64,000 bases of DNA, from sequence record LR745206.1; one strand, 5' to 3'. Below are positions 5,398 through 63,791 of the stretch, one piece after another. Position 1 is the first letter of the stretch, and the number at the start of each line of letters is the position of its first letter. Both the position numbers and the translations under genes were made by a program. Under the pieces are notes generated by a model that did no database searches, was not told the origin of the DNA, and was given only the letters and a program-made list of their open reading frames with translations.

Positions 5398-6192
5398 ATG
5401 ATAGAAGAAAAGGATATTGTTTTTGTAACTAATTCATTATATACGAAATGGATGGATTATCAATCAAAAATAATTAAAAAACTATTTCCGGAAAGTGAAC
5501 ATGTTATTATTAATGGTGGTACACCATATTTTAGATCCAAATGGCCAAATTCTTGGTTCTTTTGGATAGATGAGGTTAAAAAATCAGACAAAAAATATTA
5601 TATTCATATAGATGAAGATTTCTTTTTAACATCTAAAATAGAATTATTGAAAGCTATTGAGAAATTTGAAAATAACAATATAGATTTGATGGGCTGTCCA
5701 GATGGATATCACCATTTTAGAGGAGCTAATCCAGTTGCTATAAATACATTCCTAATGATTGGTAGAGTAAGTGATTTAAAAAGATTGGATAATGATATTT
5801 TAAGAAATGCTAAATATAATTTAGTATCTTATGATGGTAGTTCATACTCTTGGGTAAATGATATAGGTATAAAATTTAGAGAAGAATATAAAAATGATTT
5901 TAATTATCCATTTGAGGACCAAGGTGGATCTAATTTTATAAATGATCATGAACCTTATTATGCTTTCTTATGGTCTATGAAGGAGCTGGGTTGTAAGTTT
6001 GATTATTTATATCCTTTTTTCGATAATAGATTCAAATCTACTAATCCTAGATTAGAAAAAGATTCAGAAGATATCGGAATACATATGTGGTATACAAGAC
6101 AATGGGATAACACAATGGATGTTTGGGGATTACCAAATGTTGAAAGATATAATTTAGTTGAAAAGTATCTTAATGAATTATATGAAATCTAA
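5398..6192 (+). CDS. putative glycosyltransferase
   Basis: YYIHIDEDFF DxD motif, C-terminal IHMWY, cluster context. Confidence 0.45.
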   Translation: MIEEKDIVFVTNSLYTKWMDYQSKIIKKLFPESEHVIINGGTPYFRSKWPNSWFFWIDEVKKSDKKYYIHIDEDFFLTSKIELLKAIEKFENNNIDLMGCPDGYHHFRGANPVAINTFLMIGRVSDLKRLDNDILRNAKYNLVSYDGSSYSWVNDIGIKFREEYKNDFNYPFEDQGGSNFINDHEPYYAFLWSMKELGCKFDYLYPFFDNRFKSTNPRLEKDSEDIGIHMWYTRQWDNTMDVWGLPNVERYNLVEKYLNELYEI

Positions 6193-6361
6193 AAAACATA
6201 TTAGTTCATCTTATGGTATTGATGTAGAGGATAAATTAACTTCTATGTTATCAGAAGAATTGGCTAAGGAAATTGATAAGAGTATTCTAAGTGGTCTTGG
6301 TATTGAACCAGATAGATATAAACGTAGAAAGAATTCTATTAATAAGATATTTAAACAATAG
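6182..6361 (+). CDS. small protein with major-capsid-like helix and C-terminal R-x-x-K tag
   Basis: Likely start ATG 6182. YGIDVEDKLTSMLSEELAKEIDKSIL, ends RRKNSINKIFKQ. Confidence 0.6.
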   Translation: MKSKKHISSSYGIDVEDKLTSMLSEELAKEIDKSILSGLGIEPDRYKRRKNSINKIFKQ

Positions 6362-6869
6362 CAAATTCTATTTTAGCAAAAAGATATTCATCAGAGGAAT
6401 ATCCATTATCATTTAAATAAGATTTATAATCCATTTCACCTATCCCGGTGAATTTATATAAAGGAATTCGGTAACTATCAGGGTTTTGAACTTGTTGAGC
6501 TTTTCCATTAAAGTATATGATGAATTTAGAATCAAATCCTTGATCAACTAATCTATCTCTAGTTTCACTCATTCTATCAAGTATATTTTCGAATTCTTGT
6601 TCGATACCTTCTTTTTTAAGACACTTTTTTAGTTGTATTATTGTATAAAATTCTGGACCACTCCCAATATAATATGACCAATCTTCATCTTGGATCAAAT
6701 CAGCAAAATAAGGTTTGAATTCATCTGATATATCTCTATTTCCTTGATATAATCTTTGTCTATTCTTATATTGAGTATAAGATTTTAAACGTCCTAAATT
6801 ATGACTGATATCTTTCAAAGATTTTAATAAATCATCTTCGTCAGATTCAAACATTTTTAAATATTTCAT
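6351..6869 (-). CDS. hypothetical protein with N-terminal capsid-targeting-like (CTS-like) motif
   Basis: True start likely ATG 6869 (MKYLKMFESD), directly after TAATATATA. Confidence 0.7.
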   Translation of the reverse strand: MKYLKMFESDEDDLLKSLKDISHNLGRLKSYTQYKNRQRLYQGNRDISDEFKPYFADLIQDEDWSYYIGSGPEFYTIIQLKKCLKKEGIEQEFENILDRMSETRDRLVDQGFDSKFIIYFNGKAQQVQNPDSYRIPLYKFTGIGEMDYKSYLNDNGYSSDEYLFAKIEFAIV

Positions 6870-6873
6870 AAAG

Positions 6874-6882
6874 TATATATTA
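6874..6882 (-). promoter_or_regulatory. putative phage late promoter TAATATATA
   Basis: Exact motif just upstream of ATG 6869, recurrent across the window. Confidence 0.55.
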
Positions 6883-7479
6883 AATCTTCTGAATAATAAC
6901 CGGTAGAGTACCAAGTTCAAGAACTTTACTTTTATTAAGTAAGAACTCAATGTCGTAGAAGTTGAAGTGGAAAGTCATTGTAAATTCTTTAGCATTTACT
7001 TTTTGTTGAGAATAGTTAAAATCATTATCTGATAAAGATTTCAATACAATTTCGTAAAATTTTATAACATAAATAGCATCTCGATGTATGTCAAGAGCTG
7101 TTATCGTAAATGGATTTAAGAAAGAGTTTTCAACGTCTAAATAATGTTTATTAATTATATCAAACATTAACCAATAATTTAAATCAGAATCAACAGATCT
7201 AAAAGTAACTTGTAATTCACGAGTCGTTATTATATCCTGTATATTAGTAGCTGGTTTAAATTGTCTTTCTTTACCTCTCATAGTAATTTGTTTTGGCATA
7301 TCAAAAGAAATACCAGGGAAGTTAACACTCTTCATAGTTGAGTTTATATAATCTATTACATTCTCATACTGTATCCAATTCTTTTCTAGAATTGGAGTAT
7401 AAGTCTCAAGTATTTCTGATGGTAAGAAATCACCTGGTAGGTTAAATATAAACTGACTGGATTGGCTACTTAATCTCAT
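6880..7479 (-). CDS. putative tail tube/baseplate-type structural protein
   Basis: Beta-rich pattern LQVTFRSVDSDLNYWLMFD...FTMTFHFNFYD, reminiscent of T4 gp19/gp54-fold proteins, in a late operon. Confidence 0.4.
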   Translation of the reverse strand: MRLSSQSSQFIFNLPGDFLPSEILETYTPILEKNWIQYENVIDYINSTMKSVNFPGISFDMPKQITMRGKERQFKPATNIQDIITTRELQVTFRSVDSDLNYWLMFDIINKHYLDVENSFLNPFTITALDIHRDAIYVIKFYEIVLKSLSDNDFNYSQQKVNAKEFTMTFHFNFYDIEFLLNKSKVLELGTLPVIIQKI

Positions 7480-7481
7480 TA

Positions 7482-9465: not shown

Positions 9466-9474
9466 TATATATTA
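9466..9474 (-). promoter_or_regulatory. putative late promoter TAATATATA
   Basis: Exact motif upstream of 7482..9443. Confidence 0.55.
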
Positions 9475-13850: not shown

Positions 13851-14260
13851 GGTCTTATTAATAATCTTATGATACTATCATCACCATTTTCAAAAAATAT
13901 CTCTGATGGTTTATAAATAGTTTTAAATCTATCAACATCCTCTTTTAATTGATTAACTATATTATAATAACTATCAAAATCTTCCATCTTTGCTTTATCA
14001 TAAAAATCATGGTGAAAAGATAATTCAAAACCCTCAACACAAGTTAGTAATTGTCTTTGATCACATTTTGCACCCAAAAGTTTCATACCACTGAAATCAT
14101 TATGTGCCCAATCCATCTTACTATTAGGATTAAAATAAACAATATCAATAACAGTAGCTGATCCAGATTCACAAAGGTCAAATGTATGGGCAAAGAAGTT
14201 TTGCAAATCATCTTTAGATAACTCTTGATTATTTTCATTAAATCTTCTTAAATGATTCAT
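13847..14260 (-). CDS. hypothetical protein, CTS-like N-terminus
   Basis: MNHLRRFNEN. Confidence 0.7.
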   Translation of the reverse strand: MNHLRRFNENNQELSKDDLQNFFAHTFDLCESGSATVIDIVYFNPNSKMDWAHNDFSGMKLLGAKCDQRQLLTCVEGFELSFHHDFYDKAKMEDFDSYYNIVNQLKEDVDRFKTIYKPSEIFFENGDDSIIRLLIRP

Positions 14261-15573
14261 TTTTTTCTAATAACTTTTATTCTCTCAGTTTGATATTCCA
14301 TTATATCTACCTCTTGGTGTTGTTTCAATAAATCAACCATACCTTGATACATCTGAACTGTTATTCGACAATCAGTAATAGCATCGTGATATCCAGACAT
14401 ATTAATACCAAGAGCAGGTCCTATTTTTGACATTGATGATGATATTAAACCACCATCTCTTGGTGACTTACCGATAGCATCAATCATCTCTTTATATTTA
14501 ACATCACTTTCAGCTAGTTTCTGTAATAATGGTAAAAAATATAATTGTATTAGCATTTTAGTATCAAATACCTCATTTTTAATTTTATGTCCATATCTAC
14601 CAGCTAACATAGCCATATCAAAGGCAGCATTTTGTGCAATTAATAAACAAGGCTCATAATCAGAGATGAATTGAAAAAAGTCATTAATAACTTGTTCTTC
14701 ATCTTTATATTTATAACCACCAGATCCATATCTGTTAAATCCTAGAACCCATTTAGTCCTATCTTCTGGTTCGTTATATTTAGACTTTGTATCTTTTGTT
14801 AGTTTTATTTTCTCATCAAATTTACCAAGTTCGCTAAATTTATTATTATTAAAATCACACTCAGTTACTAAACATGAAACTTGTGTTAGTTGTTCATTCC
14901 TAGGACCATTTAATCCAGTAGTTTCTGTATCTAACCAAACCCAAGGCATATCAGTTTTAGAATCTAACCAAGATAGTATTTCTGGTATAGTTTTATACCA
15001 CATCTTATTTTCATTTATCGATTCTGATATCTTATTAATATCAAATTTATATTCTTTACCAATAGCATCAGAATATGTTATTTTATTTATGTTTTTAACT
15101 GTATATTTATAGTCTGGTTTAATATATTTCTTACCAGTGCCCTTTTTAACATAAGCAATTGTTAAGTGTGGTTTATAATCAGGATATTCATTTGAATTTG
15201 GTAACTCAGATAATTTATCAAACAAATATTGTAATGATCCCTTTGGTTCTACATTGAACTTAACAACATCAAATTTAGAATTCTCAAATATATCAACACC
15301 ATTAACCTCAATATCTATATCACCATCAAAGGAGTCGAATACAGACTTAACTTCTTCTATTGATACTTCCTTATGTAAACCATATAATAATGTAAGGTGT
15401 GGTCTCTTTTGTATACCATAAGTCGAATCACCATCTTCCTCATAGATATCTTCTGGATCAATCCAAGATGTAATTTCTTCCCAGTTTGAAACTGGGACAT
15501 CAATCATAACACAACCATATTTGTGTCCGTTTATAGATTCTTTTATAAATTGCTTGTATTTCTTTAATTTCAT
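14257..15573 (-). CDS. Acb1/gp57B-like 2H phosphodiesterase fused to DEDDh (DnaQ-like) exonuclease, CTS-like N-terminus
   Basis: MKLKKYKQFIKES. Two HxT motifs (RPHLTLLYG, KPHLTIAY), then LDTETTG, QNAAFD, HDAITD. Confidence 0.85.
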   Translation of the reverse strand: MKLKKYKQFIKESINGHKYGCVMIDVPVSNWEEITSWIDPEDIYEEDGDSTYGIQKRPHLTLLYGLHKEVSIEEVKSVFDSFDGDIDIEVNGVDIFENSKFDVVKFNVEPKGSLQYLFDKLSELPNSNEYPDYKPHLTIAYVKKGTGKKYIKPDYKYTVKNINKITYSDAIGKEYKFDINKISESINENKMWYKTIPEILSWLDSKTDMPWVWLDTETTGLNGPRNEQLTQVSCLVTECDFNNNKFSELGKFDEKIKLTKDTKSKYNEPEDRTKWVLGFNRYGSGGYKYKDEEQVINDFFQFISDYEPCLLIAQNAAFDMAMLAGRYGHKIKNEVFDTKMLIQLYFLPLLQKLAESDVKYKEMIDAIGKSPRDGGLISSSMSKIGPALGINMSGYHDAITDCRITVQMYQGMVDLLKQHQEVDIMEYQTERIKVIRKK

Positions 15574-15820: not shown

Positions 15821-16105
15821 ATGTTTAATAAAAACAGTGTGGATAGAAATCATATTCTCACTTTTCTAAATTATAGAGAAAGGGGTGGGGTTTCAATAAC
15901 TTGTACTTGTGGTAAGGAGATTATAACATTAGATGATTTTGAAATATCTGATGGTAGAATGCACAATGACCAACATACTGTTAATATTGAACCAATCACA
16001 GGTAAATTTATCCCATTTCAACTAACCGAAGTTTACTACAATGATGTTGTTTTACATATAGCATCAATTGAAAGAAACGATAAAATCAATAAAATAATAA
16101 AATAA
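15821..16105 (+). CDS. small protein with CxC motif and C-terminal tag
   Basis: ITCTCGKE, ends ERNDKINKIIK. Confidence 0.65.
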   Translation: MFNKNSVDRNHILTFLNYRERGGVSITCTCGKEIITLDDFEISDGRMHNDQHTVNIEPITGKFIPFQLTEVYYNDVVLHIASIERNDKINKIIK

Positions 16106-16899: not shown

Positions 16900-17175
16900 T
16901 TAGTTTAAGTTATAATTAATCATTCTTATATCTTCATCATCGTCATAATCTTCTTCATCATCGTCTCCATCAAAATCAAATCCCATATTTACTAAATAGG
17001 ACATAACTTCATCAGTTAACTCAAGATTTCCATCCCTCTCCTCCATAAAATTATCAAACATACTTGTTGTGAAGAATCCTTTTTCATCTTTGATTTTTTG
17101 TAATTTAGGTAATAAATCTTTAGCTATTTCCTCAGCCAATTTACCATACGATTCAAATGTTTTTAAATACTTCAT
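16900..17175 (-). CDS. acidic hypothetical protein, CTS-like N-terminus
   Basis: MKYLKTFES. Confidence 0.7.
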   Translation of the reverse strand: MKYLKTFESYGKLAEEIAKDLLPKLQKIKDEKGFFTTSMFDNFMEERDGNLELTDEVMSYLVNMGFDFDGDDDEEDYDDDEDIRMINYNLN

Positions 17176-17396
17176 TATCTTATTCCTTCATTTTTTAATG
17201 CCGCATTATGTGCATTGGAACCAATATAAGTTTCAACTCTCATTACATTAGGTTCACCCTCTTCAACATCCCAGGCTTCTTCTTCGGTCATAAACCATCT
17301 ATCACCAACATATCCATCACCAGCATCATATGCTCTACAATAGACAACGACTTTATCTGATTCATTACTCTCATTAAATTTATTTAAGTGTTTCAT
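17175..17396 (-). CDS. hypothetical protein, CTS-like N-terminus
   Basis: MKHLNKFNES. Paralog of the C-terminal half of 17399..17902. Confidence 0.7.
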   Translation of the reverse strand: MKHLNKFNESNESDKVVVYCRAYDAGDGYVGDRWFMTEEEAWDVEEGEPNVMRVETYIGSNAHNAALKNEGIR

Positions 17397-17398: not shown

Positions 17399-17902
17399 TT
17401 ATTTACTATTTCTTCTTGCTTTTCTATGTATATCTGATCCAATGAATGTCTCTACACTACCATTACAATGTTCACCCCATCCTTCATCTTGATTATCTTC
17501 CGCGGCTTCGGCTTCTTCATCTGTTAAATACCATTCTAAACTAACAGAACCATCACCATTATTCATACAAGCGTAATAAACAACAATCTTTTCAAGTGTG
17601 TTACCTGGTTTACTTACAATATTTGATGTATCTGATTCACTTCTGACATCATCCGCTATTATTTTCAAAAATCCATCTACATCACTAACTCTACCTGAGT
17701 TTATTACCATATCAAGATCTTCGATTGTCATATCAATATCATCATAAAGTTCACCTAATTCGGATAGAATATCAACACTAGCAGGTTCATCACCTTGCTC
17801 ATATTCAGATTCGTCATAATTTATAATAGAGTTGGATCTTGTTATAAAATCATTAACCTTATTATGGTTTACTGATTCATTAAATTTCTTTAAGTGTTTC
17901 AT
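17399..17902 (-). CDS. acidic hypothetical protein, CTS-like N-terminus
   Basis: MKHLKKFNES. Confidence 0.7.
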   Translation of the reverse strand: MKHLKKFNESVNHNKVNDFITRSNSIINYDESEYEQGDEPASVDILSELGELYDDIDMTIEDLDMVINSGRVSDVDGFLKIIADDVRSESDTSNIVSKPGNTLEKIVVYYACMNNGDGSVSLEWYLTDEEAEAAEDNQDEGWGEHCNGSVETFIGSDIHRKARRNSK

Positions 17903-18537
17903 TATTTCTTCTTCTTATTTTCACCACTAAAAGGACTTAGTAAATGTTTTAAATTCCAAGATGGAACAAACTTCTTATTATGTTTCTCAAAATCTTCATA
18001 TGATTCAATTCCTGTATCAATTGGATTTTGAGCATATTGTATATTAGCTCCTTGTTTAGATAAATCAGATATTCTATCACCAATATCAGTACCTTTAGTA
18101 AGTTTTCTTAATTTTTTAAGTTGATCAACTGTTTGTTGTCTAGGCAGTGATTCATTAATATTATCTTCTGAACCCCAAGTTTCGGTACCATCACCATTAT
18201 CAGTCTTTTTAAGTTTAAATCTTTTCTTCAAGTCATTCATTTGATCAAGAGCAGCATCCATATCTTCTGGTGATAAATTTGATAACATACTTCTTAATTC
18301 TTCCTCTGTATATGTATTCATCAAATCAACAGCATTTTTCAATTGTAATAGTTCTTGATACTCATCATTTTTAAGTATATTTTCTCCACACTCCGGGCAA
18401 GAAGCATCAACATGATTTGGATAATCTTCGAATGGTATAGACATATCATTCCAATCACAACTAGGATTATCACATTTCAATCCATGTATATCTAAACTAG
18501 CATCATCATTTTCATTAAATTTCTTTAAGTGATTCAT
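17902..18537 (-). CDS. zinc-ribbon protein, CTS-like N-terminus, internal INES site
   Basis: MNHLKKFNEN, CDNPSC...CPEC, DNINESLP. Confidence 0.7.
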   Translation of the reverse strand: MNHLKKFNENDDASLDIHGLKCDNPSCDWNDMSIPFEDYPNHVDASCPECGENILKNDEYQELLQLKNAVDLMNTYTEEELRSMLSNLSPEDMDAALDQMNDLKKRFKLKKTDNGDGTETWGSEDNINESLPRQQTVDQLKKLRKLTKGTDIGDRISDLSKQGANIQYAQNPIDTGIESYEDFEKHNKKFVPSWNLKHLLSPFSGENKKKK

Positions 18538-18809
18538 ATTTCATCCATAAATAATTTATCTAGGTAATCCCAAGTCTCTTGGTAACCACCATGTAATCCC
18601 CACTTATCTTCTAAGTAAGATGTTATATCATCAGCTTTATCCTCAACACCTAATTCATCATTATTAGCAACTTCTAAGAATTTGTTCTTTAAGTCTTCAT
18701 GTCCATCATAAAGATCAAAGTCTTTATCACTTAACCATTGATTAAATTTAACCCAATGTGATTGATATCCATCTCTATCAAACTCTTCAAATATTTTAAT
18801 ATGCTTCAT
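18534..18809 (-). CDS. hypothetical protein, CTS-like N-terminus
   Basis: MKHIKIFEE. Confidence 0.7.
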   Translation of the reverse strand: MKHIKIFEEFDRDGYQSHWVKFNQWLSDKDFDLYDGHEDLKNKFLEVANNDELGVEDKADDITSYLEDKWGLHGGYQETWDYLDKLFMDEI

Positions 18810-18832: not shown

Positions 18833-18841
18833 TATATATTA
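18833..18841 (-). promoter_or_regulatory. putative late promoter TAATATATA
   Basis: Exact motif heading the five-gene CTS operon. Confidence 0.55.
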
Positions 18842-18891: not shown

Positions 18892-19437
18892 GTGTTAAGT
18901 AATAAAAAGCAAAAGTGGTCAAAAAATAGAAAGCGTCTAAGGGATGCTTTAGAAAGCAATGTGCATGAGAACCAAATAGAAAATCTGGTAGAAAATTTCA
19001 AACTTTTAAGACCAGATGAATTTGAAACTTGTAAAGGATCATTATTGTTAATATCCATCAAAAGTGGATCTAAAGAATGTTCTGAGTTTTTAATAGAAAA
19101 TGGTGCTATTTGTAATCCTAACCTTATATTATTTGAGTGTAAATATGATAACATACACATTGTGTATGACTTAATAGATAATTTAGTTGAAAAATATCCA
19201 AATGCTTTCACACAAAAATTTTCAATAAATAAGAAATCCTTAATATCAAGAGTTATTGATCCATCAAAAGTTAGTGATAATGATAAAAGGATTGATTATG
19301 TTTTTGATCAAATGTTATTCTTCGGATATAAAGAAGTAAGAGAAGTAATTGATGAAAACTATAAATCTAAACCTGAAAAATGGTCTAAATTAATATCAGT
19401 GATTAGGGAAATTAAATTAAGAGAATTAGGAATATGA
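18892..19437 (+). CDS. ankyrin-like repeat protein with C-terminal tag
   Basis: Probable GTG start 18892. LLISIKSGSKECSEFLIENGAICN resembles an ankyrin repeat. Ends IREIKLRELGI. Confidence 0.55.
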   Translation: MLSNKKQKWSKNRKRLRDALESNVHENQIENLVENFKLLRPDEFETCKGSLLLISIKSGSKECSEFLIENGAICNPNLILFECKYDNIHIVYDLIDNLVEKYPNAFTQKFSINKKSLISRVIDPSKVSDNDKRIDYVFDQMLFFGYKEVREVIDENYKSKPEKWSKLISVIREIKLRELGI

Positions 19438-19832
19438 AATTAGTATATAAAAACGATAAATATCCTTGTGTTTTAAAAAGTGAAATGGAACCAAACATGT
19501 GGTATAATATGGAACCTATTAAACTAACAGTGACCATACCAATGACTGATTACTTTAATATTAGAACAGATATTAAAGATTGTAATGATCAGTTCCATTT
19601 CAAACTACTTGTTGATAAAAGAGATAGGGTGAATAACTTTAGCAATGAGTTTGTTGCCGGCCTTTGGTCAATAGATTCAAACTTTGAAAGATCAACAATT
19701 ACATCTAGCTTTAGTAAGGGTGTGGTTAATGTAATATTCAAATTACACATAGTTGATAGAGAGCTTAATGATAAAAGTGAATTAAGGGATTTAATAATAA
19801 ATGATTTATTTAAAAGTGAAAAAGCCGAGTAG
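19434..19832 (+). CDS. hypothetical protein with C-terminal tag variant
   Basis: Ends LRDLIINDLFKSEKAE. Confidence 0.6.
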   Translation: MKLVYKNDKYPCVLKSEMEPNMWYNMEPIKLTVTIPMTDYFNIRTDIKDCNDQFHFKLLVDKRDRVNNFSNEFVAGLWSIDSNFERSTITSSFSKGVVNVIFKLHIVDRELNDKSELRDLIINDLFKSEKAE

Positions 19833-19900: not shown

Positions 19901-19935
19901 TATATCTTATATATTAATATAAATACTTTTGTTAT

Positions 19936-21491: not shown

Positions 21492-21892
21492 GTTATATAA
21501 GCACATATAAGATATTAAAATCATTAAAACCAATCGAATTATACGATATAATTACAGGAGGATATTGTTCTGAATATAGAGAGGAGTTTAAAAGAGAGGT
21601 TATTTCTTTGAAAGGTGAATGGTATCTAAATAATTGGCATAATAATAAAATAGAATTGGATATATTATGTGCTTATATATCTGATACAGGATTTACACTA
21701 TATACCACAAAAGAAGAGGCTAAAAGAATTGAAGAGGAATTTAAAAGTTGGAATTTATTTACTGAGGTTTGGTCAAAATGGTATGGTGGTAAAACTTATG
21801 TAGTTGGATTTAATTACTCATATGAGGCATTTAGTAAATTATATTTAGAATATAAAAGAGATAAGAAAATTAATCAATTGGTTAATTTATAA
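21488..21892 (+). CDS. hypothetical protein with C-terminal tag
   Basis: Ends YKRDKKINQLVNL. Confidence 0.65.
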   Translation: MSYISTYKILKSLKPIELYDIITGGYCSEYREEFKREVISLKGEWYLNNWHNNKIELDILCAYISDTGFTLYTTKEEAKRIEEEFKSWNLFTEVWSKWYGGKTYVVGFNYSYEAFSKLYLEYKRDKKINQLVNL

Positions 21893-22327
21893 ACTATTTG
21901 AGTGTTCTCCCCACTCAATAAATATAGTTATATAAGATAATATCTTATCCCTATAAATTTCATCAGATTCTTTATCTATTTTATATCTTATATCTGGATA
22001 TTTATCTTTAATCCTGTTGATACAAGTTTCAACATCCTTATATATCTCTAATATTTCATTGGTATTTTTTAAGAAATATTCTATACTCCCAGAAGCTACT
22101 CCAATTGAGTATCCGTCCATTTTTTTATTCGATTTGTGTATGGTTGGTAGGTTAATATTAATAGAACATTCAGCAAATGGTAAACCAGAACCAAATTTAG
22201 CATCAGAGACACCCTCATCAAATTCAAATTCTGATCCATCGTCTATAAAATCAGAGAATACTAATTTTATATAATCGGATACTTCTGAATTATCAACAGA
22301 TTCGTTATATTTTTTTAAATATTTCAT
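21887..22327 (-). CDS. hypothetical protein, CTS-like N-terminus
   Basis: Start ATG 22327, MKYLKKYNES. Paralog of 23489 and 23944. Confidence 0.7.
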   Translation of the reverse strand: MKYLKKYNESVDNSEVSDYIKLVFSDFIDDGSEFEFDEGVSDAKFGSGLPFAECSININLPTIHKSNKKMDGYSIGVASGSIEYFLKNTNEILEIYKDVETCINRIKDKYPDIRYKIDKESDEIYRDKILSYITIFIEWGEHSNSL

Positions 22328-26438: not shown

Positions 26439-26635
26439 TTGAATAGGTTTTTTATTTTCTTTTTTCTTGATTCCACTTTCCCGTCTTTTAGATAATCACT
26501 ATATCTTATATTTTTATTTAAATTTTCACATAAGTAATCACAATAAGCACTTTGTAGATTCAAATTTTCAGATATATATTCAGAATAAGATATATTCTTT
26601 TCTAGGCTTTCGGCTATATAATCCTCATAATTCAT
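26435..26635 (-). CDS. small 14-residue-repeat protein with C-terminal tag
   Basis: Start ATG 26635. Y-x-[DE]-Y-[IL]-x-E-[SN]-L repeats, ends [11 protein letters not shown]. Confidence 0.65.
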   Translation of the reverse strand: MNYEDYIAESLEKNISYSEYISENLNLQSAYCDYLCENLNKNIRYSDYLKDGKVESRKKKIKNLFN

Positions 26636-26831
26636 AAATATTTTTAATTTTTTTCTTTCTACTACCAGACCTATCAGTCCAAACATCAGAATGGAAGGTT
26701 AATTGCATCCATTTGTTATTTTGATAAATATAATTCACACAATCAATAGTATTATAATAAATATCACCTTCTATTGGTTCTGATGGTACAGAAGTTGAAA
26801 CACTTAACTGATATTTAAATGGATCTATCAC
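26625..26831 (-). CDS. small protein with tail-fibre-like motif and C-terminal tag
   Basis: [13 protein letters not shown]...YIYQNNKW, ends [12 protein letters not shown]. Confidence 0.6.
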
Positions 26832-27910: not shown

Positions 27911-28242
27911 TATCTTAATATCTTTGTTAATTTTATTTCTCTATATATTTGTTTAGTTGTATCTGTTAACTTTATATACACATATCTATTATAAACTATA
28001 ACAAACTCACGCTCACCATTTATCGGTGATAACATTGTTCTGTAATTCATAATAGGCATTTCATCAACTATTTCACAAAATATATCCTCAACATTTTCAA
28101 TTTTACAATCTTCTATCATTGATAACCTCTCACAAAAATAATTCATAAATGGTGTTGAGGTTTCTATAACTTGGTTAAGTAATTTATCGGTCTTAAAACT
28201 ATCAGGAGCCCATTCTGATATTTCAACATACCAATCAATCAC
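27910..28242 (-). CDS. hypothetical protein with C-terminal tag
   Basis: Ends [11 protein letters not shown]. Confidence 0.65.
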
Positions 28243-28780
28243 TTGTAATACTTTTAATTTTAATATCCCTATCGTTTCGTTTTTTTAATCTCAAAATTTC
28301 ACTTTTAACATCATAACATTCTAAAACTTTCTCAATAAGACCAGCGATATAATTATCCACGATTAAACTCAGTGTTTCCGCTGTTCTATCAATTTTATCA
28401 AAATATTTTAATGTTTCTTTTGAATTTATCAACATATCAACCAGATAAATATTGAACTCATCAATATCAAAGAGTAATTGAAATAATTCCAATCTTATAC
28501 CCTCATCATAATTACCTTGAAATAGTGGTGGTGGTTTTATAAATATTTTATTAAAAACTCTAATAACTGCTGGTAAAATAAGATCAAGTGTCTCATCTTC
28601 ACCGTCATACAAACAACCCTTCAATTCTTTTTTATTGAAAGTATCTGTGTTGTTTATAACATACTCTAATAAATTAGTAACACCTTCCTTATTTTTATCA
28701 ATTAAATTTGTTGATAAAGAATCAATTAAAGATTTTTTATATTTTATATTTGATTTAATATCAAAAAAATCTACTTTCAT
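28235..28780 (-). CDS. hypothetical protein (possible capsid N-terminal-like segment) with C-terminal tag
   Basis: NKEGVTNLLE...ETLDLILPAVIRVFNK, ends [12 protein letters not shown]. Confidence 0.6.
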   Translation of the reverse strand: MKVDFFDIKSNIKYKKSLIDSLSTNLIDKNKEGVTNLLEYVINNTDTFNKKELKGCLYDGEDETLDLILPAVIRVFNKIFIKPPPLFQGNYDEGIRLELFQLLFDIDEFNIYLVDMLINSKETLKYFDKIDRTAETLSLIVDNYIAGLIEKVLECYDVKSEILRLKKRNDRDIKIKSITSD

Positions 28781-30866: not shown

Positions 30867-31136
30867 ATGAATATAGTTTTTCTAAATAAATGGAGAGTGA
30901 TATCTGAGAATATTTTATCAGATGAAGATCTTAATGTGTTTGTGTTAAAATATGAACTGAGAAAATTTGGAACTGCTGAGATTATACTACTATTTGAACA
31001 TTTCTATAAAATAGATATTAATGAATATACAATAAGTGATATAATCTTTGATGGATCAAATATTAGAGTAAACTTGAAGGACGAAGATATAATAAAAATA
31101 AGAGAACGAAAAATTAATACTATACTAAGTGAGTAA
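30867..31136 (+). CDS. hypothetical protein with C-terminal tag
   Basis: Ends IRERKINTILSE. Confidence 0.65.
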   Translation: MNIVFLNKWRVISENILSDEDLNVFVLKYELRKFGTAEIILLFEHFYKIDINEYTISDIIFDGSNIRVNLKDEDIIKIRERKINTILSE

Positions 31137-34952: not shown

Positions 34953-35366
34953 ATGATAACAGACGCGAAAATACAAAAAGTACAAAATAGAATTAAAGCA
35001 GCAATTGTTGAAATATCAAAAGAAGAAAATGTTAGTATAAACTTTTCATCTTGTAGATATAATAGTGCATACTACACCACAACCATGAAAGTATCCACAC
35101 TTGACAAAAATGAAAAAGTTAAGGGTATTTATGAATCAATTTGTAAAAGATTGGGGTTTACACAGGATGTTATCGGTATGAAATTTCAAAGTGATAGAAA
35201 TGGTATTTGTGAAATAATTGAGATTAAAACTAGAAATAGGAAATATCCAGTTATCGCAAAAACCGTTAGTGGTAAGCAATATAAATATTCAGTAAGTCAA
35301 ATAAAGAGATTAATTGGTGGTGATAAAATTATAAATAGAAATGCTAACATAGATAAGTTAATCTAA
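34953..35366 (+). CDS. hypothetical protein with C-terminal tag variant
   Basis: Ends INRNANIDKLI. Confidence 0.65.
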   Translation: MITDAKIQKVQNRIKAAIVEISKEENVSINFSSCRYNSAYYTTTMKVSTLDKNEKVKGIYESICKRLGFTQDVIGMKFQSDRNGICEIIEIKTRNRKYPVIAKTVSGKQYKYSVSQIKRLIGGDKIINRNANIDKLI

Positions 35367-35683
35367 TGACTAGAAAGGATATAGAATTACTAGTATCAAA
35401 TATAGGTTTAAATAATCCCGATACTCTAACAGAAGATATTTTACATATTTCTAATATGCTAGAAGGTATACAAGAATATATAATGACAAGAAAACCAACA
35501 TCAAAGTTTATGGAATTATGTGGTGATGAAAATTGGGAATATGCGTCTAGTATTGGTGATAGACTCAATAAGGAAGTTTTGGAAAAGACTCAAACATTTC
35601 AAGATTTTGTTAAAAAAATTAAAACTTCCCCTGAATATATTTGTAAAATCAGAAGTGAAAAATTAAATGTTATAGGAATATGA
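35366..35683 (+). CDS. hypothetical protein with C-terminal tag
   Basis: Ends IRSEKLNVIGI. Confidence 0.65.
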   Translation: MTRKDIELLVSNIGLNNPDTLTEDILHISNMLEGIQEYIMTRKPTSKFMELCGDENWEYASSIGDRLNKEVLEKTQTFQDFVKKIKTSPEYICKIRSEKLNVIGI

Positions 35684-36243: not shown

Positions 36244-36442
36244 GGTTGGTGATATTGTTAGATGGTGTTGGACAGAAATTCACCAGAGCACTTATATAAT
36301 CTTAGATATTAATCAAACAAGTGTTTTATTAAAGCAAAATTTTGGAATGGGTCAAACACTAACTGGTAGGGTTCCAATATCCGAATTGAATATTTCGAAA
36401 GATAAATTTCGAGATTATTATCTACGAAAAATAGGATTATAG
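36230..36442 (+). CDS. small SH3/KOW-like protein with C-terminal tag variant
   Basis: Start ATG 36230, YKVGDIVRW, ends FRDYYLRKIGL. Confidence 0.55.
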   Translation: MVEYKVGDIVRWCWTEIHQSTYIILDINQTSVLLKQNFGMGQTLTGRVPISELNISKDKFRDYYLRKIGL

Positions 36443-42828: not shown

Positions 42829-42837
42829 TATATATTA
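42829..42837 (-). promoter_or_regulatory. putative late promoter TAATATATA
   Basis: Exact motif upstream of 41547..42803. Confidence 0.55.
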
Positions 42838-49419: not shown

Positions 49420-49420
49420 T

Positions 49421-50927: not shown

Positions 50928-51140
50928 TTAAATACCGAGTGATTTTATTTTTAGGTGTCTATCTAATAGTTTATAATCCTCTTTACCCATTGATAGTGTT
51001 ATCTTTTTATCTTTATAATGATCACCTTTTATATAGTCTATAAAAACTGAGTTTGTATAGTAAGTAACTTCTAATATTTCAACATCATCAAAGAAGCTAA
51101 TATCAATATCATATAATTCACCATATATTCTAACAGTCAT
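50928..51140 (-). CDS. small protein with C-terminal tag
   Basis: Ends DRHLKIKSLGI. Confidence 0.6.
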   Translation of the reverse strand: MTVRIYGELYDIDISFFDDVEILEVTYYTNSVFIDYIKGDHYKDKKITLSMGKEDYKLLDRHLKIKSLGI

Positions 51141-51546
51141 ATTTTATAATCTCCACACCAGCTTCTTTTAGAAACTCCAAACCAGAAGCATCTTTATATT
51201 CTTTTATATAAACTAATCGTTTTATACCAGATTGTAAAATCAATTTAGAGCAGTCTTTACAAGGTGAATGTGTTTGATATAAAGTACCACCTTCACAAGA
51301 ATGTCCATGTCTAGCACATTTAAGAATAGCGTTAGCTTCTCCATGTATTACATACCAATTAGTGGTACCATCTTCTATCTCACAAGCGTTATCGAACCCT
51401 GTGGGTGTACCATTATATCCATCTGATATAATCATACCATTCTTAACTATAAGAGCTCCTACTTGTTTCCTATTACAATGTGAGAGTGTCGCCCACTCTT
51501 TAGCCATATTCAAATAGGTTCTATCGTATCTTTCTTGTTTATCCAC
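51130..51546 (-). CDS. dCMP deaminase (ComEB-like)
   Basis: Probable GTG start. VGALIV, GYNGTP, HGEANAI, PCKDC. Confidence 0.9.
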   Translation of the reverse strand: MDKQERYDRTYLNMAKEWATLSHCNRKQVGALIVKNGMIISDGYNGTPTGFDNACEIEDGTTNWYVIHGEANAILKCARHGHSCEGGTLYQTHSPCKDCSKLILQSGIKRLVYIKEYKDASGLEFLKEAGVEIIKYDC

Positions 51547-51694
51547 CAAAAATATTTTTAATTTTATATTTTCTAAATTCCTCTTTTGTTAATTGTAGTA
51601 TGTTTTTAAGAGCCCACTCAACACTAACCGCATTAGTACCACTCATAGCACTAAACATCTCTGCTCTCATTTTTGCTTTACTGATACTTCTCAT
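51539..51694 (-). CDS. 51-aa protein with portal-like segment and C-terminal tag
   Basis: MRSISKAKMRAEMFSAMSGTNAVSVEWALKNILQLTKEEFRKYKIKNIFGG. Fills the nusG-deaminase gap. Not in the ORF track. Confidence 0.6.
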   Translation of the reverse strand: MRSISKAKMRAEMFSAMSGTNAVSVEWALKNILQLTKEEFRKYKIKNIFGG

Positions 51695-53641: not shown

Positions 53642-54031
53642 TTATTTCTTTATAACTTCATCTATCTTTCTGTCTCTCTCTAATACAATGAATTTACTTT
53701 CTAAGAATTTTTCTATTTCTTTTGGTAATGAAACTTGCTGCTTTTTTAACTCATCATAATAAGGTTTACCTAAAACATTAATTATTGATATAATCATAGC
53801 AACATTAGAATCCAACCAACCTTCCACTTCTAGATCTTCCCCTAAAATATGGTAGGTTGTTTTTTGAGGTTGTATTGAATACCCAACAAAATTACCAGAA
53901 GAGTTTGATACAGTTATATTTGATCCACTTGAAATTGTTACATTTGATCCAGTTCCATAGATAGAGCTTGTTGTGCCTGTGTAGATAGAGCTTGTGTGTA
54001 CATTACTACCATTTATATTTACGAATCCCAT
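53642..54031 (-). CDS. hypothetical protein, S/T-rich N-terminus, C-terminal tag
   Basis: Ends ERDRKIDEVIKK. Confidence 0.65.
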   Translation of the reverse strand: MGFVNINGSNVHTSSIYTGTTSSIYGTGSNVTISSGSNITVSNSSGNFVGYSIQPQKTTYHILGEDLEVEGWLDSNVAMIISIINVLGKPYYDELKKQQVSLPKEIEKFLESKFIVLERDRKIDEVIKK

Positions 54032-54060: not shown

Positions 54061-54597
54061 TTAAAGTATCATATTAATTTGAATATCTCTATATAATGTT
54101 CTAAAATCATCCCTTATCTCATTATCATAATCTGATATATCTTTACCAGCATAATAATCAAAGTATGAATTATTAACCTTCTTTAGCACAACTTCATAAC
54201 AATCTTTTATTAAATCTGAGCAATTTTCTTTTATACACCAATCGACCATATTTTTAATTAAATCGAATTCCATTTTTTTAAATCCTATATAAAATGGTTT
54301 TTGCGCATATGAAAAAAGATAATGTGTGATTACCTTCTCGTTTAGATACTCAACACCTTTAGGGTTAGATAGTTCTGGTGTGGTGAAGTAGAATTTATAT
54401 CCTGAATCAATCACCCACTTTGTTAATTTTAATATTTGTCTTTGTATTTTATTCTCTAGAAATATATAAACAATATCATCATCTATAAAAGCTACTGGTA
54501 CATGCTCATATTTTTTATACATAAGGTAATTACCCTTAACTAACCAATCACAATCATGTGGTCTAAATTTAAGTGGTATCAAATCATTTAATTCCAT
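54061..54597 (-). CDS. hypothetical protein with C-terminal tag variant
   Basis: Ends YRDIQINMIL. Confidence 0.65.
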   Translation of the reverse strand: MELNDLIPLKFRPHDCDWLVKGNYLMYKKYEHVPVAFIDDDIVYIFLENKIQRQILKLTKWVIDSGYKFYFTTPELSNPKGVEYLNEKVITHYLFSYAQKPFYIGFKKMEFDLIKNMVDWCIKENCSDLIKDCYEVVLKKVNNSYFDYYAGKDISDYDNEIRDDFRTLYRDIQINMIL

Positions 54598-54930: not shown

Positions 54931-55368
54931 TTAATCTAAAACCGAATTTAACTTGATATCTCTTTTATATGAATTTATTACACTTTCTAATGATTGTGTA
55001 TTTATATCCTTATCCAACATAGTTTTAATATTCTGTATTGAAAAACTACAATCTATATATGATAGATCATTTCCATCCCAAGAAAATGGTGATGTTTTAA
55101 ATAGTGTATTCTTTACTTGTAAAATATCAAATCTTATCACATCACCAACTCTATTTTGATGTGATATGATAAGTATATCAGTATTCACTATATCATCATA
55201 CCCAACATCAGGCATATCTTGAAATTTACAGTTTATTATATCATTTACAATTTCATATCTCTCAATATGTGCTGTTTTAGTCTCACCAGATTTTGTTATG
55301 AATCTAGCATCATAGAGACTTGTATAAATTGGCTCAATCGATTTATGTGCAAAGTGTGGTAATCCCAT
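54931..55368 (-). CDS. tail-tube-like protein with C-terminal tag
   Basis: MGLPHF...EPIYTSLYDARF...QNRVGDVIR, ends KRDIKLNSVLD. Confidence 0.5.
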   Translation of the reverse strand: MGLPHFAHKSIEPIYTSLYDARFITKSGETKTAHIERYEIVNDIINCKFQDMPDVGYDDIVNTDILIISHQNRVGDVIRFDILQVKNTLFKTSPFSWDGNDLSYIDCSFSIQNIKTMLDKDINTQSLESVINSYKRDIKLNSVLD

Positions 55369-57236: not shown

Positions 57237-57264
57237 TATATATAGTAAAATAAAAACTTTGTTT
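57237..57264 (-). promoter_or_regulatory. putative middle promoter AAACAA-N16-TATATA
   Basis: Upstream of the topoisomerase large subunit, identical architecture to 59019..59046. Confidence 0.5.
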
Positions 57265-57508
57265 AAGAGTTTAACAATTCTGATATCTTTCTATCTCTGT
57301 CTATACCCCTTAACACACCTACTATATTTGATTCATATCCAGAATAAATTGGGTGAAGATAATCTTCCTCATCAACATAAGATAATTGCCAATGATTTGG
57401 ATAATTTGGCTTTTCCCACAATATATGTTTACCATTGAAAGTTGGTTTAGACCACTCATCAAACTCTTCGCAATAAATAAAACCATATTTCTCAGGAAAT
57501 TCACTCAT
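57263..57508 (-). CDS. small protein with C-terminal tag
   Basis: Ends DRDRKISELLNS. Confidence 0.6.
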   Translation of the reverse strand: MSEFPEKYGFIYCEEFDEWSKPTFNGKHILWEKPNYPNHWQLSYVDEEDYLHPIYSGYESNIVGVLRGIDRDRKISELLNS

Positions 57509-60420: not shown

Positions 60421-60428
60421 TATATTTG
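60421..60428 (+). promoter_or_regulatory. Bacteroidota-type -7 element TATATTTG
   Basis: 4 nt before ATG 60433. Confidence 0.5.
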
Positions 60429-61569: not shown

Positions 61570-61573
61570 TATT

Positions 61574-62191
61574 ATGGGTATTTTGGAGATTATGATTATA
61601 TTTTTTATGGGTATTTTGATTGGTGGTTTTACAACAAAACTATTATCAAAATATTCTGATAAATTACAAAGGGAGAAATTAATTGATAACATAAATTCAC
61701 AATACAAACAGATTCTTAGAAGTGTTTCTAAAGGTGAGGCTAAATTTAAGAATAGGGTAAATAATACTGTATTCATTTCATCTAATCTAAAAGAACATGG
61801 TGATGTTGATGTTATTTACATGATGGATAATAAAGATATAGCCATATTTAAAAATAATAAATGTATTTATACATCTGAATCAGTTAACAGTGAAGTTGTA
61901 AAGGATATAACAGTAACTATTGATAATAGATATCAAAATCAAATAAATGATGTTGTTGATATTCTTGGATTCAAATTTTATAGAGAAGAGTTTGAAAAGT
62001 CATTCAAAGGTGAAATAAAATCTCTTGATATGACTAAATTGGATTTATCAGATATTGATAAAATTAAAAATGAAAATGACTCCAAGTTCACGATAAATGA
62101 TGTATTGGATAAGATAAGTAAAAGTGGGATGGATAGTCTTACATTTGAAGAAAGAATATTTCTTGATGAATATAGTAAAAACAATGGATAG
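61574..62191 (+). CDS. membrane-anchored protein with DUF6576-like C-terminal motif
   Basis: N-terminal hydrophobic helix, C-terminal INDVLDKISKSGMDSLTFEERIFL. Confidence 0.55.
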   Translation: MGILEIMIIFFMGILIGGFTTKLLSKYSDKLQREKLIDNINSQYKQILRSVSKGEAKFKNRVNNTVFISSNLKEHGDVDVIYMMDNKDIAIFKNNKCIYTSESVNSEVVKDITVTIDNRYQNQINDVVDILGFKFYREEFEKSFKGEIKSLDMTKLDLSDIDKIKNENDSKFTINDVLDKISKSGMDSLTFEERIFLDEYSKNNG

Positions 62192-62534
62192 GATAGTAAA
62201 TCTAACTCCATTCTCTATACTTTCTCAAGTAAATGAAATAGAACATCACACTTTATTAGAGATTACCACTATCGTAATAGAAAATAGTGGTAATTTTTTT
62301 TACATAAAAGATGAAGTTGAAAAGATATTAGATGTCTCTAATATGCCTCAGTATATTAAAGAAGATTGGATTAATTATAACAAAAAAGAATTAAATATTG
62401 CTTTATTGAATCACCAGATAAAGAATCTCGAAAATATTCTTGAATATAAAAGACCATATGATGAAAAGGATGAAGAAGCTCTTATTTTATTGAAATCTTT
62501 GAGAAGGGATTTAATTATCAACGGGCTTATCTAA
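62184..62534 (+). CDS. hypothetical protein with C-terminal tag variant
   Basis: Start ATG 62184, ends LRRDLIINGLI. Confidence 0.6.
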   Translation: MDRIVNLTPFSILSQVNEIEHHTLLEITTIVIENSGNFFYIKDEVEKILDVSNMPQYIKEDWINYNKKELNIALLNHQIKNLENILEYKRPYDEKDEEALILLKSLRRDLIINGLI

Positions 62535-62966: not shown

Positions 62967-62970
62967 AGTG

Positions 62971-62979
62971 TATATATTA
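62971..62979 (-). promoter_or_regulatory. putative late promoter TAATATATA
   Basis: Exact motif 4 nt before ATG 62966. Confidence 0.55.
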
Positions 62980-62990
62980 ATATAATTCCT

Positions 62991-62998
62991 TATATTTG
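62991..62998 (+). promoter_or_regulatory. Bacteroidota-type -7 element TATATTTG(C)
   Basis: 4 nt before ATG 63003. Confidence 0.55.
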
Positions 62999-63002
62999 CT
63001 TC

Positions 63003-63164
63003 ATGGATAATATAACTACACATAAAGACCCAACAGAAAACTACACACCAGTAGGTCAAACATTCTGTAAGGGTAAATGCGATACGAAAGCTATAAGAAC
63101 GAAAGAAGGTCTTGTTGTTCTTTGTGATGGATGTAAAAGGGTTGTTATTGATAATAGAGATTAG
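63003..63164 (+). CDS. 53-aa Cys-rich (possible zinc-binding) protein
   Basis: FCKGKC...LCDGC. Not in the ORF track. Confidence 0.55.
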   Translation: MDNITTHKDPTENYTPVGQTFCKGKCDTKAIRTKEGLVVLCDGCKRVVIDNRD

Positions 63165-63529
63165 TGGAATATTTACCAGGTATAATAGATGAAAGTCTTC
63201 AAAAATTAAATTATTTTGAAATATTAAATGATTTTAATGTACCATTGTACCCTAATAGATTCGATGATGATATTTCAAACAATGATATTACGGATTCAAT
63301 AGAATTTAAAGGTGGTGAAATATTAATTCTTAGATGGTTTAAACCAAAAACAACAAGAACACTTTATAGTTTTGTGGTTGGATATTATAAATCAGATAAG
63401 TACCATGAGGTTAAAAGAGAATGTCCTATGAGTATGGATTTTGTTTCTATCAATACTGCTATACTTAATAATATAACCAATTCATTTGTAAGAGAATTGA
63501 AGATAGATTCTATATTATATGGTTTGTAG
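63164..63529 (+). CDS. hypothetical protein with C-terminal tag
   Basis: Ends VRELKIDSILYGL. Confidence 0.65.
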   Translation: MEYLPGIIDESLQKLNYFEILNDFNVPLYPNRFDDDISNNDITDSIEFKGGEILILRWFKPKTTRTLYSFVVGYYKSDKYHEVKRECPMSMDFVSINTAILNNITNSFVRELKIDSILYGL

Positions 63530-63791
63530 ATGTAAGTTAAATTTTATGATGAAGGATTTTCACTTTATTGATGGTGAAATCTATGATTATGATTATGATA
63601 GTCATGAAGAAACTGGAATTTTGATTTTTTATATAAAAGGTAGAAGATTATCATTTTCAACAGGTCTTCCATTTGTTGATGGTAAGCTTCCGATGGTAGA
63701 AGATAAATTCCGGAAGTATTTCGATGATTTACAATATTTAAGAGAAGAAAAATTAAAACAATTATTTGATGATATTAGCGAAAACAGTTAA
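63519..63791 (+). CDS. hypothetical protein with C-terminal tag
   Basis: Ends LREEKLKQLFDDISENS. Confidence 0.6.
   Translation: MVCRCKLNFMMKDFHFIDGEIYDYDYDSHEETGILIFYIKGRRLSFSTGLPFVDGKLPMVEDKFRKYFDDLQYLREEKLKQLFDDISENS

Follow-up and report, generated by a model that had tools for sequence, protein, structure and literature searches.

Short peptide addresses that are common to otherwise different proteins are an established principle in bacteriophage T4 and in encapsulins. T4 loads diverse proteins into its prohead by means of such a sequence (PMC3012670, PMC9026906); this capsid-targeting sequence (CTS) occupies the first 10 residues of late, packaged proteins and is cut by the prohead protease. 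Encapsulin cargo proteins, which are unrelated to one another, carry a C-terminal targeting peptide that docks on one partner, the HK97-fold shell (PMC10960027, PMC8346489). The current work concerns a peptide tag near the C-termini of many small proteins encoded in LR745206.1, the 634,780-bp record, without annotation, of an uncultured megaphage; bases 434001-498000 of this record form the window (64,000 bases). In the sequence logo the tag reads [K/I/L]-[S/Q/E]-x-[I/L]-R-[D/E/N]-x-K-[I/L]-[N/K/D]-x-[I/L/V]-[L/G/I/F]-[D/K/I/N], a block that spans positions -4 to +9 of its Arg.

Like the T4 CTS, the tag is a short common address on diverse, fast-evolving small phage proteins (PMC3012670, PMC9026906). 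It differs in position, with 160 of 189 copies lying 10 or fewer residues from the C-terminus and 8 in the first 35 residues; perhaps in processing, no consistent [L/I]-x-E-type site being seen in the logo at -4 to -1; and in a proxy for timing, the box TAATATA standing at 12% of the operon heads of tagged genes versus 81% of those of CTS-like genes in the same genome. The encapsulin peptide shares with the tag the C-terminal location and the unrelated carriers. The tag, however, has another consensus and no obvious Gly/Ser/Pro-rich linker at -25 to -5, and its genes are scattered over 634 kb, in an early-type promoter context, rather than placed beside a shell gene. Position, timing proxy, linker and gene context set the tag apart from the T4 CTS or the encapsulin peptide, and processing may do so as well.

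Other known signals share single properties with the tag. The PIP (PCNA-interacting protein) box or clamp-binding motif and the MIT-interacting motifs of ESCRT-III, a tentative comparison, are short, often C-terminal, of the form h-x-x-h-h (h, hydrophobic), and bring many proteins to one hub. The tag contains such a core, [IL]-x-x-[ILV]-[LIFG] at +4 to +8, but it has no conserved Gln and instead an invariant Arg and a Lys; its carriers are ORFans, unlike the polymerases, ligases and nucleases with PIP-type motifs, and just two helicases have internal copies. In lambda CII for FtsH and in MuA for ClpX, a C-terminal element hands an early phage regulator to an AAA+ machine. These are single-protein cases, some of which need the very end of the chain, whereas the tag has 0-10 variable residues after its core, is helical in models and is found on about 17% of the proteome. 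Degrons of the ssrA or MuA kind depend on the last residues and the free carboxylate, and membrane helices of the MinD/FtsA type on a high hydrophobic moment and a clear apolar face; the tag shows neither property, its moment not exceeding that of untagged C-termini. While the principle of a short common address is known, the scale, the clade-specific expansion and an apparent two-label code are remarkable. No C-terminal motif of this type in huge, jumbo or nucleus-forming phages was found described in the full-text literature, in agreement with the sequence-only reading of this DNA that preceded the analysis.

Form, frequency and conservation of the tag

Gene calling gave 954 open reading frames (ORFs) genome-wide and, for the window, 96; it was crude, the genome-wide set following a greedy longest-ORF rule, and the counts below are approximations. 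The sequence-only reading had named 22 window ORFs with a shared C-terminus, each designated by the low coordinate of the ORF and not by the site of the motif, and all 22 exist and end in the motif. Its consensus of nine residues recognized the motif but not the full length, the conserved block having 13-14 residues. The strict pattern R..K[IL]..[ILV] occurs 19 times among the window genes, and 15 of these matches end 9 or fewer residues from the C-terminus, where a uniform distribution would place 0.9; 1000 per-protein shuffles gave a mean of 0.12 C-terminal matches and a maximum of 2. Genome-wide, 120 of the 954 ORFs carry the strict pattern at the C-terminus. An iterated 13-residue position-specific scoring matrix (PSSM), used at a threshold of at least 12 bits, gave 160 matches at 10,494 C-terminal positions and 29 at 176,468 internal ones (odds ratio 94, Fisher p = 6e-168). 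Enrichment at C-termini over both shuffled and internal positions was thus confirmed, and the supposed scale of about 22 proteins proved too small: with small uncalled ORFs included, about 160-170 of some 954 proteins are tagged.

On 160 unrelated bodies, an invariant Arg is combined with a near-invariant Lys at a fixed distance. After the core come 0-10 residues, mostly 1-3 past the [I/L/V] at +7; in a subclass rich in Lys, the end reads ...KIKNIFGG or ...KIKNLFN. In the logo, hydrophobic positions extend upstream at -9, -6, -5 and -1, and no position-specific conservation is seen at -25 to -5. Tagged proteins have a median length of about 100 aa (range 46-731 aa); among ORFs with 75-150 aa, 29-38% are tagged, and the 108 ORFs with 300-500 aa include no tagged one. 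Their genes are clustered, with 57 adjacent pairs versus 27 expected, and are densest at both ends of the record.

The tag acts at the protein level. In a six-frame scan at 16 bits or more, 152 of 163 matches fell in the frame of a called gene, and each of the other 11 lay 0-9 codons before the stop of a small uncalled ORF. Synonymous codons at the conserved R, D, K, I and L are used broadly as genome-wide (AGA 72% versus 76%, AAA 81% versus 74%, GAT 92% versus 91%); the interchange of Ile and Leu crosses first codon positions, and third positions vary as in the rest of the genome. Relatives with a G + C content (GC) of 0.39-0.40 (loci L033 and L047) retain the tag, and Prevotella phage Lak-A1 (100 kb, GC 0.26) gave no match of at least 14 bits in any frame, versus 12 in the first 50 kb of the window. 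Overlap with the next same-strand gene is found for 48% of tagged and 25% of untagged small genes, and TGA stops are twice as frequent in tagged genes; both features are consistent with tight packing in small-gene operons. A convergent gene follows 20% of the tagged genes, and the distribution of tail lengths after the tag is much alike for next genes that overlap, that start after a gap and that are convergent. The tag at 21845..21883 is not an initiation signal for the next gene, because no same-strand gene lies downstream. Selection for an A-rich initiation region of the next gene was considered as the main cause of the tag and rejected: it can produce neither the invariant Arg and Lys nor the tags at convergent ends, and it is also contradicted by the persistence at 40% GC and the absence from Lak-A1. 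Such selection may color the variable positions of the tag.

The proteins that carry the tag are otherwise unrelated, as had been proposed. After trimming of the tag, an all-against-all BLASTP comparison at E = 1e-3 left 156 of 160 bodies as singletons, with two pairs. A Pfam search of 150 tagged proteins gave no match better than E = 8.6e-5, whereas 150 length-matched untagged proteins matched 37 families, with E below 1e-5 for at least 23 (p = 1e-7). Searches against PHROGs returned 7 single matches, 6 without description and one to "acyl carrier protein" at E = 1.4e-6, and transmembrane-like segments were seen in 5% of tagged proteins as against 13%. The tag is not strictly terminal. Of the 29 copies lying more than 10 residues from the C-terminus, 8 are within the first 35 residues, and most are probably real because Lak-A1 gives no chance match in a comparable search space. 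Two internal copies lie in helicases: a DEAD/ResIII/Helicase_C protein has the tag at residue 197, within the DEAD-matched region, and an XPD-like helicase at residue 242, between both helicase lobes. The earlier claim that no enzyme of the window is tagged holds for C-terminal copies, as judged from the 150 tagged proteins searched. The portability seen in the internal copies speaks for a modular motif and against signals that need a chain end or a stop codon.

The distribution of the tag was compared with related megaphage records (LR756500 to LR756504, 462-735 kb each) and with 39 IMG/VR loci recovered with the topoisomerase large subunit. Where topoisomerase identity is at least 69%, 121 of 601 ORFs are tagged (20%; 24 loci); at 62-68% the number is 13 of 169 (8%; 6 loci), and at 61% or less it is 1 of 252 (0.4%; 9 loci). 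In LR756502, 17 of 141 ORFs in 100 kb are tagged, and LR756504 has the variant consensus R-[KR]-x-[KR]-I-x-x-[LI]-[LFI]; no ORF of LR756501 or LR756500 reaches the PSSM threshold. Such clade-specific expansion is as expected if the motif co-evolves with a partner. In LR756501.1 (580001-680000), 8 occurrences of DPYGEE.W were observed in 100 kb, each either close to the N-terminus or at the C-terminal end, along with a cluster of six small genes ending in [KR]RT.LID..L; in LR756500.1 (270001-370000), YNADDFGF stands at the end of 3 proteins.

Within families, the tag appears from its sequence conservation to be under selection. In all four orthologue sets with at least three members, identity in the 9-residue core is 0.41-0.70 versus 0.32-0.43 in the body. 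All 13 orthologues of ORF 53642-54031 are tagged (core 0.57, body 0.36), as are 9 of the 10 orthologues of ORF 62166-62534 (core 0.58, body 0.37). The family of ORF 54061-54597 comprises 117 database clusters, all unnamed; 76 of its 77 close members end in YR[DE]IQIN.IL, and distant relatives have the lineage-specific variant ends ERQIKLNIFFS or FREVKISLLLSED. The turnover of tagged genes is nevertheless high, since many have no orthologue in the 100-kb stretch of LR756502 that flanks a matching gene.

N-terminal and C-terminal labels in relation to promoter-like boxes

A second label stands at the opposite end of other proteins. The N-terminal pattern MK[YH][LI][KR]x[FY][NE][ES] was found on 53 otherwise different proteins genome-wide, 8 of them in the window, and none of the 53 carries the C-terminal tag (hypergeometric p = 4e-5), which upholds the earlier observation that no CTS-bearing protein is tagged. 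The N-termini of T4 IPI, IPII and IPIII (NC_000866) follow the same pattern, with M-K, a hydrophobic or aromatic residue at position 4 and Phe at position 7, and T4 capsid targeting depends on residues 4 and 7 (PMC9026906). The N-terminal label is probably a T4-like CTS.

Structural genes were located by phmmer with T4 proteins. Directly upstream of the major capsid gene lies a putative protease-scaffold protein (LR745206.1 198546-200669, 707 aa). Its N-terminal part weakly matches the S77 prohead protease (E = 0.005, which misses the Pfam cut-off), and the protein also contains some ten repeats of 14 residues (YSEY[IL]AENLDKNIx) as well as an acidic stretch. This protein has no tag; the tag PSSM scored at best 6.5 bits on T4 head and tail proteins, and few tagged genes lie within the structural region (160-215 kb). 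The body of one tagged protein of the window, ORF 26435-26686, consists of the same 14-residue repeats (BLASTP E = 4e-17), and its relative in LR756501 ends in a different common motif, DPYGEEDWSV.

Two short promoter-like boxes distinguish the classes of genes. TAATATA, or the close variants AATATATA and TATATATA, is present upstream of the portal, capsid, protease-scaffold, tube, sheath and terminase genes and is therefore late-like; the exact box precedes 15 of the 16 CTS-like genes that have an intergenic gap of at least 40 bases. The other box, TAnnTTTG, is regarded as host-type because it is the Bacteroides -7 consensus (PMC4747536, PMC12632263). At operon heads, exact TAATATA is found in 81% of CTS-like, 27% of other and 12% of tagged cases, and TAnnTTTG in 0%, 16% and 31% (tagged versus CTS-like, Fisher p = 2e-16). 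Both boxes exceed shuffled controls (106 versus 44 for TAATATA, 65 versus 12 for TAnnTTTG). These short boxes suggest that the CTS-like class would be expressed late and the tagged class mostly early.

A proposed shared docking partner and competing explanations

Two tagged proteins were modelled with AlphaFold2. The model built from the alignment of ORF 54061-54597 has a mean predicted local distance difference test score (pLDDT) of 89, and its tag forms a helix at residues 168-177 (block pLDDT 88-92) after another helix at 159-166; in the model of ORF 53642-54031 (mean pLDDT 65) the tag is the end of a long helix at residues 104-128 (block pLDDT 68-74). Foldseek, run with the first model against the PDB, found no match with E of 0.001 or below, and the best hit of the tag profile among PDB sequences was a chance-level GyrA segment (...VRDKKIDGI..., E = 0.29). 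The tag is predicted to fold as about two to three turns of alpha-helix. By our own reasoning from a helical wheel, R0, K3, I4, I7, L8 and positions -1 and -4 would share one 180-degree arc, with the variable positions 2, 5 and 6 opposite. The median hydrophobic moment of the tag is 0.25 versus 0.27 for untagged C-termini, and the mean hydrophobicity is 0.19 versus 0.33. Of the amphipathic helix that had been proposed, the helix is borne out by the two models; the amphipathicity is not borne out by the moment.

These results lead us to favor, with a probability a little above even, a helical motif that is portable and docks mainly early proteins onto a single common partner. The conserved R/K/I/L face would dock the tagged proteins onto this partner in the infected cell. 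The tagged set would represent a mostly early, non-virion part of the proteome, and the tag would be one of two mutually exclusive address labels, the other being the N-terminal T4-CTS-like label on late proteins. As for the outcome of docking, recruitment to a cytoplasmic hub or replication site has a modest chance of being correct; removal of the tagged proteins at a set time by proteolysis, with the phage PrkA or AAA+ proteases of the host as possible machines, is a weaker candidate, and handling by the phage Hsp70/DnaJ/GrpE set seems unlikely. A wider proposal, tentative and on balance not expected although its chance is appreciable, is a two-label sorting code in this megaphage clade. The N-terminal T4-like label would lead to the capsid, and the C-terminal helix would direct about 170 early ORFans to a dedicated receptor encoded by the phage; in sister lineages, different terminal motifs would have this role (DPYGEE.W in LR756501, YNADDFGF in LR756500). 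The receptor could be a hub that concentrates early proteins where replication takes place, or else a machine for clearing the early proteome at the late switch.

Candidate partners are encoded in the window and elsewhere in the genome. The window contains a full-length Hsp70 ending in ...SYEEV and a protein of 360 aa that, from its first residues, we take to resemble DnaJ-type J-domain proteins; a GrpE domain protein is encoded elsewhere in the genome. A triad of PrkA, DUF444 (YeaH-like) and SpoVR is also present in the window. Among phage records, close copies of the triad were found only in LR745206, LR756502, LR756504, an Enterobacter phage record and Ralstonia phage RsoM2USA, and cellular PrkA-type homologues have been linked to ATP-dependent and starvation-induced bulk proteolysis (PMC9512850, PMC13684143).

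Several points weigh against a shared docking partner. Docking is a prediction, and co-occurrence of PrkA or Hsp70 with the tag did not reveal the partner. Among the megaphage genome records PrkA occurs only in the three that bear the tag, but these genomes appear to be closest relatives and the correlation is therefore weak; Hsp70 does not track the tag, being present also in the tag-poor LR756501 and the tagless Lak. Since the tag helix of ORF 54061-54597 is modelled with high confidence, it may lie against its own body and so be inaccessible to a partner. The search of the tag profile against 1.84 billion representative proteins yielded nothing informative, as expected for so short a motif; the single match, a protein of 487 aa, was matched in four stretches. 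Gene calling by the greedy longest-ORF rule is crude, the promoter classes rest on boxes of 7-8 bases in a genome of 28% GC, and 54% of tagged operon heads have neither box, in addition to the 12% with the late-type box.

Some rival explanations would dispense with a signal in the finished protein or with a present function. A DNA- or RNA-level signal (promoter, terminator or initiation region of the next gene), or a by-product of K/I/N-rich composition, would agree with the A-rich coding DNA of the tag and its frequent overlap with the start of the next gene; this is already refuted for practical purposes by the shuffles (0.12 versus 15), the frame scan with matches in one frame of the coding strand only, the codon data for first and third positions and the absence from Lak-A1 at the same GC. 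The persistence at 40% GC and the tags at convergent gene ends also contradict it. The tag might instead be read as a nascent chain in the ribosome tunnel at termination, for example favoring re-initiation on the overlapping gene in a host not reliant on Shine-Dalgarno pairing. The short, fairly fixed distance from tag to stop, the excess of overlaps and the doubled TGA stops would suit such a signal, but the tail length varies and is distributed much alike in all next-gene contexts, convergent neighbors are common, about 29 copies are internal, and Lak-A1, annotated with a Prevotella (Bacteroidota) host, has none; we regard it as highly improbable. Common descent is somewhat less remote, though still quite improbable: tagged genes could be diverged paralogues of one small ancestral gene in which only the helix is still recognizable, as their clustering might indicate and as would fit giant viruses, which often have large paralogue families. 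Against this, only 2 BLASTP pairs were found among the 160 bodies (a comparison that included no profile or fold search of all bodies), lengths range from 46 to 731 aa, the two AlphaFold2 models differ in secondary-structure make-up, and copies occur at N-termini, internally and inside helicases. Even if it were true, selective retention of the helix would still need a function.

Other explanations accept a functional peptide but give it a different role. An intrinsic structural or self-association element, in which the helix caps or stabilizes small folds or oligomerizes the tagged proteins, with themselves or among one another, and has no dedicated receptor, is unlikely. It would account for the confident modelling of one family's tag helix as part of a helix-turn-helix end and for the hydrophobic positions that continue upstream, but an invariant Arg and near-invariant Lys with fixed spacing are hard to explain by packing on different cores, and two turns are, by our own reasoning, short for a stable coiled coil. 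Moreover, the tag is not a general solution for small proteins, since the equally AT-rich Lak-A1 and the sister lineages lack it. A capsid cargo label, by which the C-terminal helix would bind the scaffold or the inner face of the HK97-fold capsid and the tagged proteins would be packaged and injected, is likewise unlikely, and a shade more so. The precedents of T4 and encapsulins (PMC3012670, PMC9026906, PMC10960027, PMC8346489), the tagged paralogue of the protease-scaffold repeats and a two-copy motif protein adjoining the portal gene (genome 194897-195382) all speak for it; yet a separate T4-CTS-like label with late-type promoters exists on 53 proteins and never with the tag, tagged operon heads have the host-type box more often than the late-type one (31% and 12%), tagged genes are rare at 160-215 kb, no linker or conservation precedes the tag, and two helicases have internal copies. 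A MinD/FtsA-type membrane-targeting amphipathic helix, or an extreme-C-terminal degron for ClpXP or a tail-specific protease, is very unlikely. The terminal location, the mixture of basic and hydrophobic residues and the Lys-rich subclass would be compatible with either, and early phage regulators are often unstable. The moment and mean hydrophobicity, however, lie below those of untagged C-termini, and the tag is modelled as a helix in two proteins and not as a floppy tail. The degron, which the sequence-only reading had offered as an alternative, fits poorly with tails of 0-10 residues and with internal copies; the last residues vary in identity and number, and the free carboxylate is therefore not part of the signal.

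Most genes of huge phages are small ORFans without a handle for study, and a single label groups about 170 of them here into one functional class. The tag is a direct experimental hook: its peptide can serve as bait, with mutants of the Arg and Lys for control. Should the tag prove to be a signal for docking or sorting, large phages would organize their early proteome by a common address, much as short linear motifs are used by cells and eukaryotic viruses, and the partner would be a central node of infection. From the contrast between tag and CTS-like label, sequence alone would then suffice in this clade to predict which proteins are virion cargo and which are intracellular effectors. A two-label code, if true, would be proteome-scale addressing without a described counterpart among bacterial viruses. 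In engineered Bacteroidota phage systems, proteins might also be loaded or tracked with the tag as a portable handle.

Positions of features and neighboring genes

Table 1. Features of the window and of the LR745206.1 genome. Positions are those of the window unless LR745206.1 is given. Letters in brackets after a tag are the residues following the core; bits are the PSSM score of each tag.
Feature	Position (strand)	ORF	Bits	Remarks
Loose tag RYKRRKNSINKIF(KQ)	6314..6352 (+)	6173-6361, 62 aa	9.0	translation
Tag ASIERNDKINKII(K)	16061..16099 (+)	15821-16105, 94 aa	17.6	
Tag ISVIREIKLRELG(I)	19393..19431 (+)	18844/18892-19437	20.0	LR756502 orthologue has degenerate end TRELLLTELGI
Tag KSELRDLIINDLF(KSEKAE)	19773..19811 (+)	19434-19832, 132 aa	20.1	orthologue retains tag
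Tag LEYKRDKKINQLV(NL)	21845..21883 (+)	21488-21892, 134 aa	20.7	next gene convergent
Tag (N)	26441..26479 (-)	26435-26686, 83 aa	16.4	
Tag (EL)	26634..26672 (-)	26625-26831, 68 aa	11.6	translation
Tag (R)	27916..27954 (-)	27910-28242, 110 aa	22.8	
Tag KRNDRDIKIKSIT(SD)	28244..28282 (-)	28235-28780, 181 aa	16.3	
Tag IIKIRERKINTIL(SE)	31089..31127 (+)	30867-31136, 89 aa	19.8	TAnnTTTG box 30855-30862
Loose tag KIINRNANIDKLI	35325..35363 (+)	34953-35366, 137 aa	11.4	orthologue retains tag
Tag ICKIRSEKLNVIG(I)	35639..35677 (+)	35366-35683, 105 aa	15.7	
Loose tag KDKFRDYYLRKIG(L)	36398..36436 (+)	36230-36442, 70 aa	14.8	
Tag KLLDRHLKIKSLG(I)	50934..50972 (-)	50928-51140, 70 aa	16.2	
Tag KEEFRKYKIKNIF(GG)	51548..51586 (-)	51539-51694, 51 aa	19.1	
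Tag IVLERDRKIDEVI(KK)	53651..53689 (-)	53642-54031, 129 aa	16.4	
Tag RTLYRDIQINMIL	54064..54102 (-)	54061-54597, 178 aa	18.6	adjoins topoisomerase genes
Tag NSYKRDIKLNSVL(D)	54937..54975 (-)	54931-55368, 145 aa	21.2	
Tag RGIDRDRKISELL(NS)	57272..57310 (-)	57263-57508, 81 aa	17.7	
Loose tag KSLRRDLIINGLI	62493..62531 (+)	62166-62534, 122 aa		coordinates by hand from ORF end
Tag NSFVRELKIDSIL(YGL)	63479..63517 (+)	63164-63529, 121 aa	17.7	
Tag LQYLREEKLKQLF(DDISENS)	63729..63767 (+)	63519-63791, 90 aa	23.0	
CTS-like gene	16900-17175 (-)			
CTS-like gene	17175-17396 (-)			
CTS-like gene	17399-17902 (-)			
CTS-like gene	18534-18809 (-)			
CTS-like gene	22324-22842 (-)			
CTS-like gene	22842-23492 (-)			
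CTS-like gene	23944-24342 (-)			
CTS-like gene	44711-45412 (-)			
TAATATA	18835-18841			
TAATATA	9468-9474			
TAATATA	42831-42837			
TAnnTTTG	30855-30862			
TAnnTTTG	19924-19931			
TAnnTTTG	60421-60428			
PrkA	46112-48034 (+)			
DUF444 (YeaH-like)	48157-49419 (+)			
SpoVR	49247-50920 (+)			
Hsp70	39636-41510 (+)			
Presumed DnaJ-type protein	26828-27910 (-)			
Helicase with strong internal tag copy	LR745206.1 120830-122440 (-)			
Helicase with strong internal tag copy	LR745206.1 235077-236744 (+)			
Tail tube	LR745206.1 166041-166661			phmmer
Tail sheath	LR745206.1 168066-171953			phmmer
Large terminase	LR745206.1 178254-180386			phmmer
Portal	LR745206.1 193127-194860			phmmer
Major capsid protein	LR745206.1 200752-202434			phmmer

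The GC of the window is 26-30% save in one 2-kb interval. Besides Hsp70, PrkA, DUF444 and SpoVR, the genes of the window include both subunits of topoisomerase II, an RNA ligase, NusG, a dCMP deaminase, a 5'-3' exonuclease, an amidase and a fusion of a 2H phosphoesterase with an exonuclease. Elsewhere in the genome (LR745206.1 25768-27963, plus strand), a protein of 732 aa contains SprB and PKD repeats and a CHU_C type IX secretion signal domain, which indicates a Bacteroidota host. The fusion in the window (14257-15573, minus strand) has 438 aa and joins a 2H phosphoesterase of the 2'-5' RNA ligase superfamily to an exonuclease of the RNase T / DnaQ type; its 2H phosphoesterase part gave a weak match to the Acb1 anti-CBASS family.

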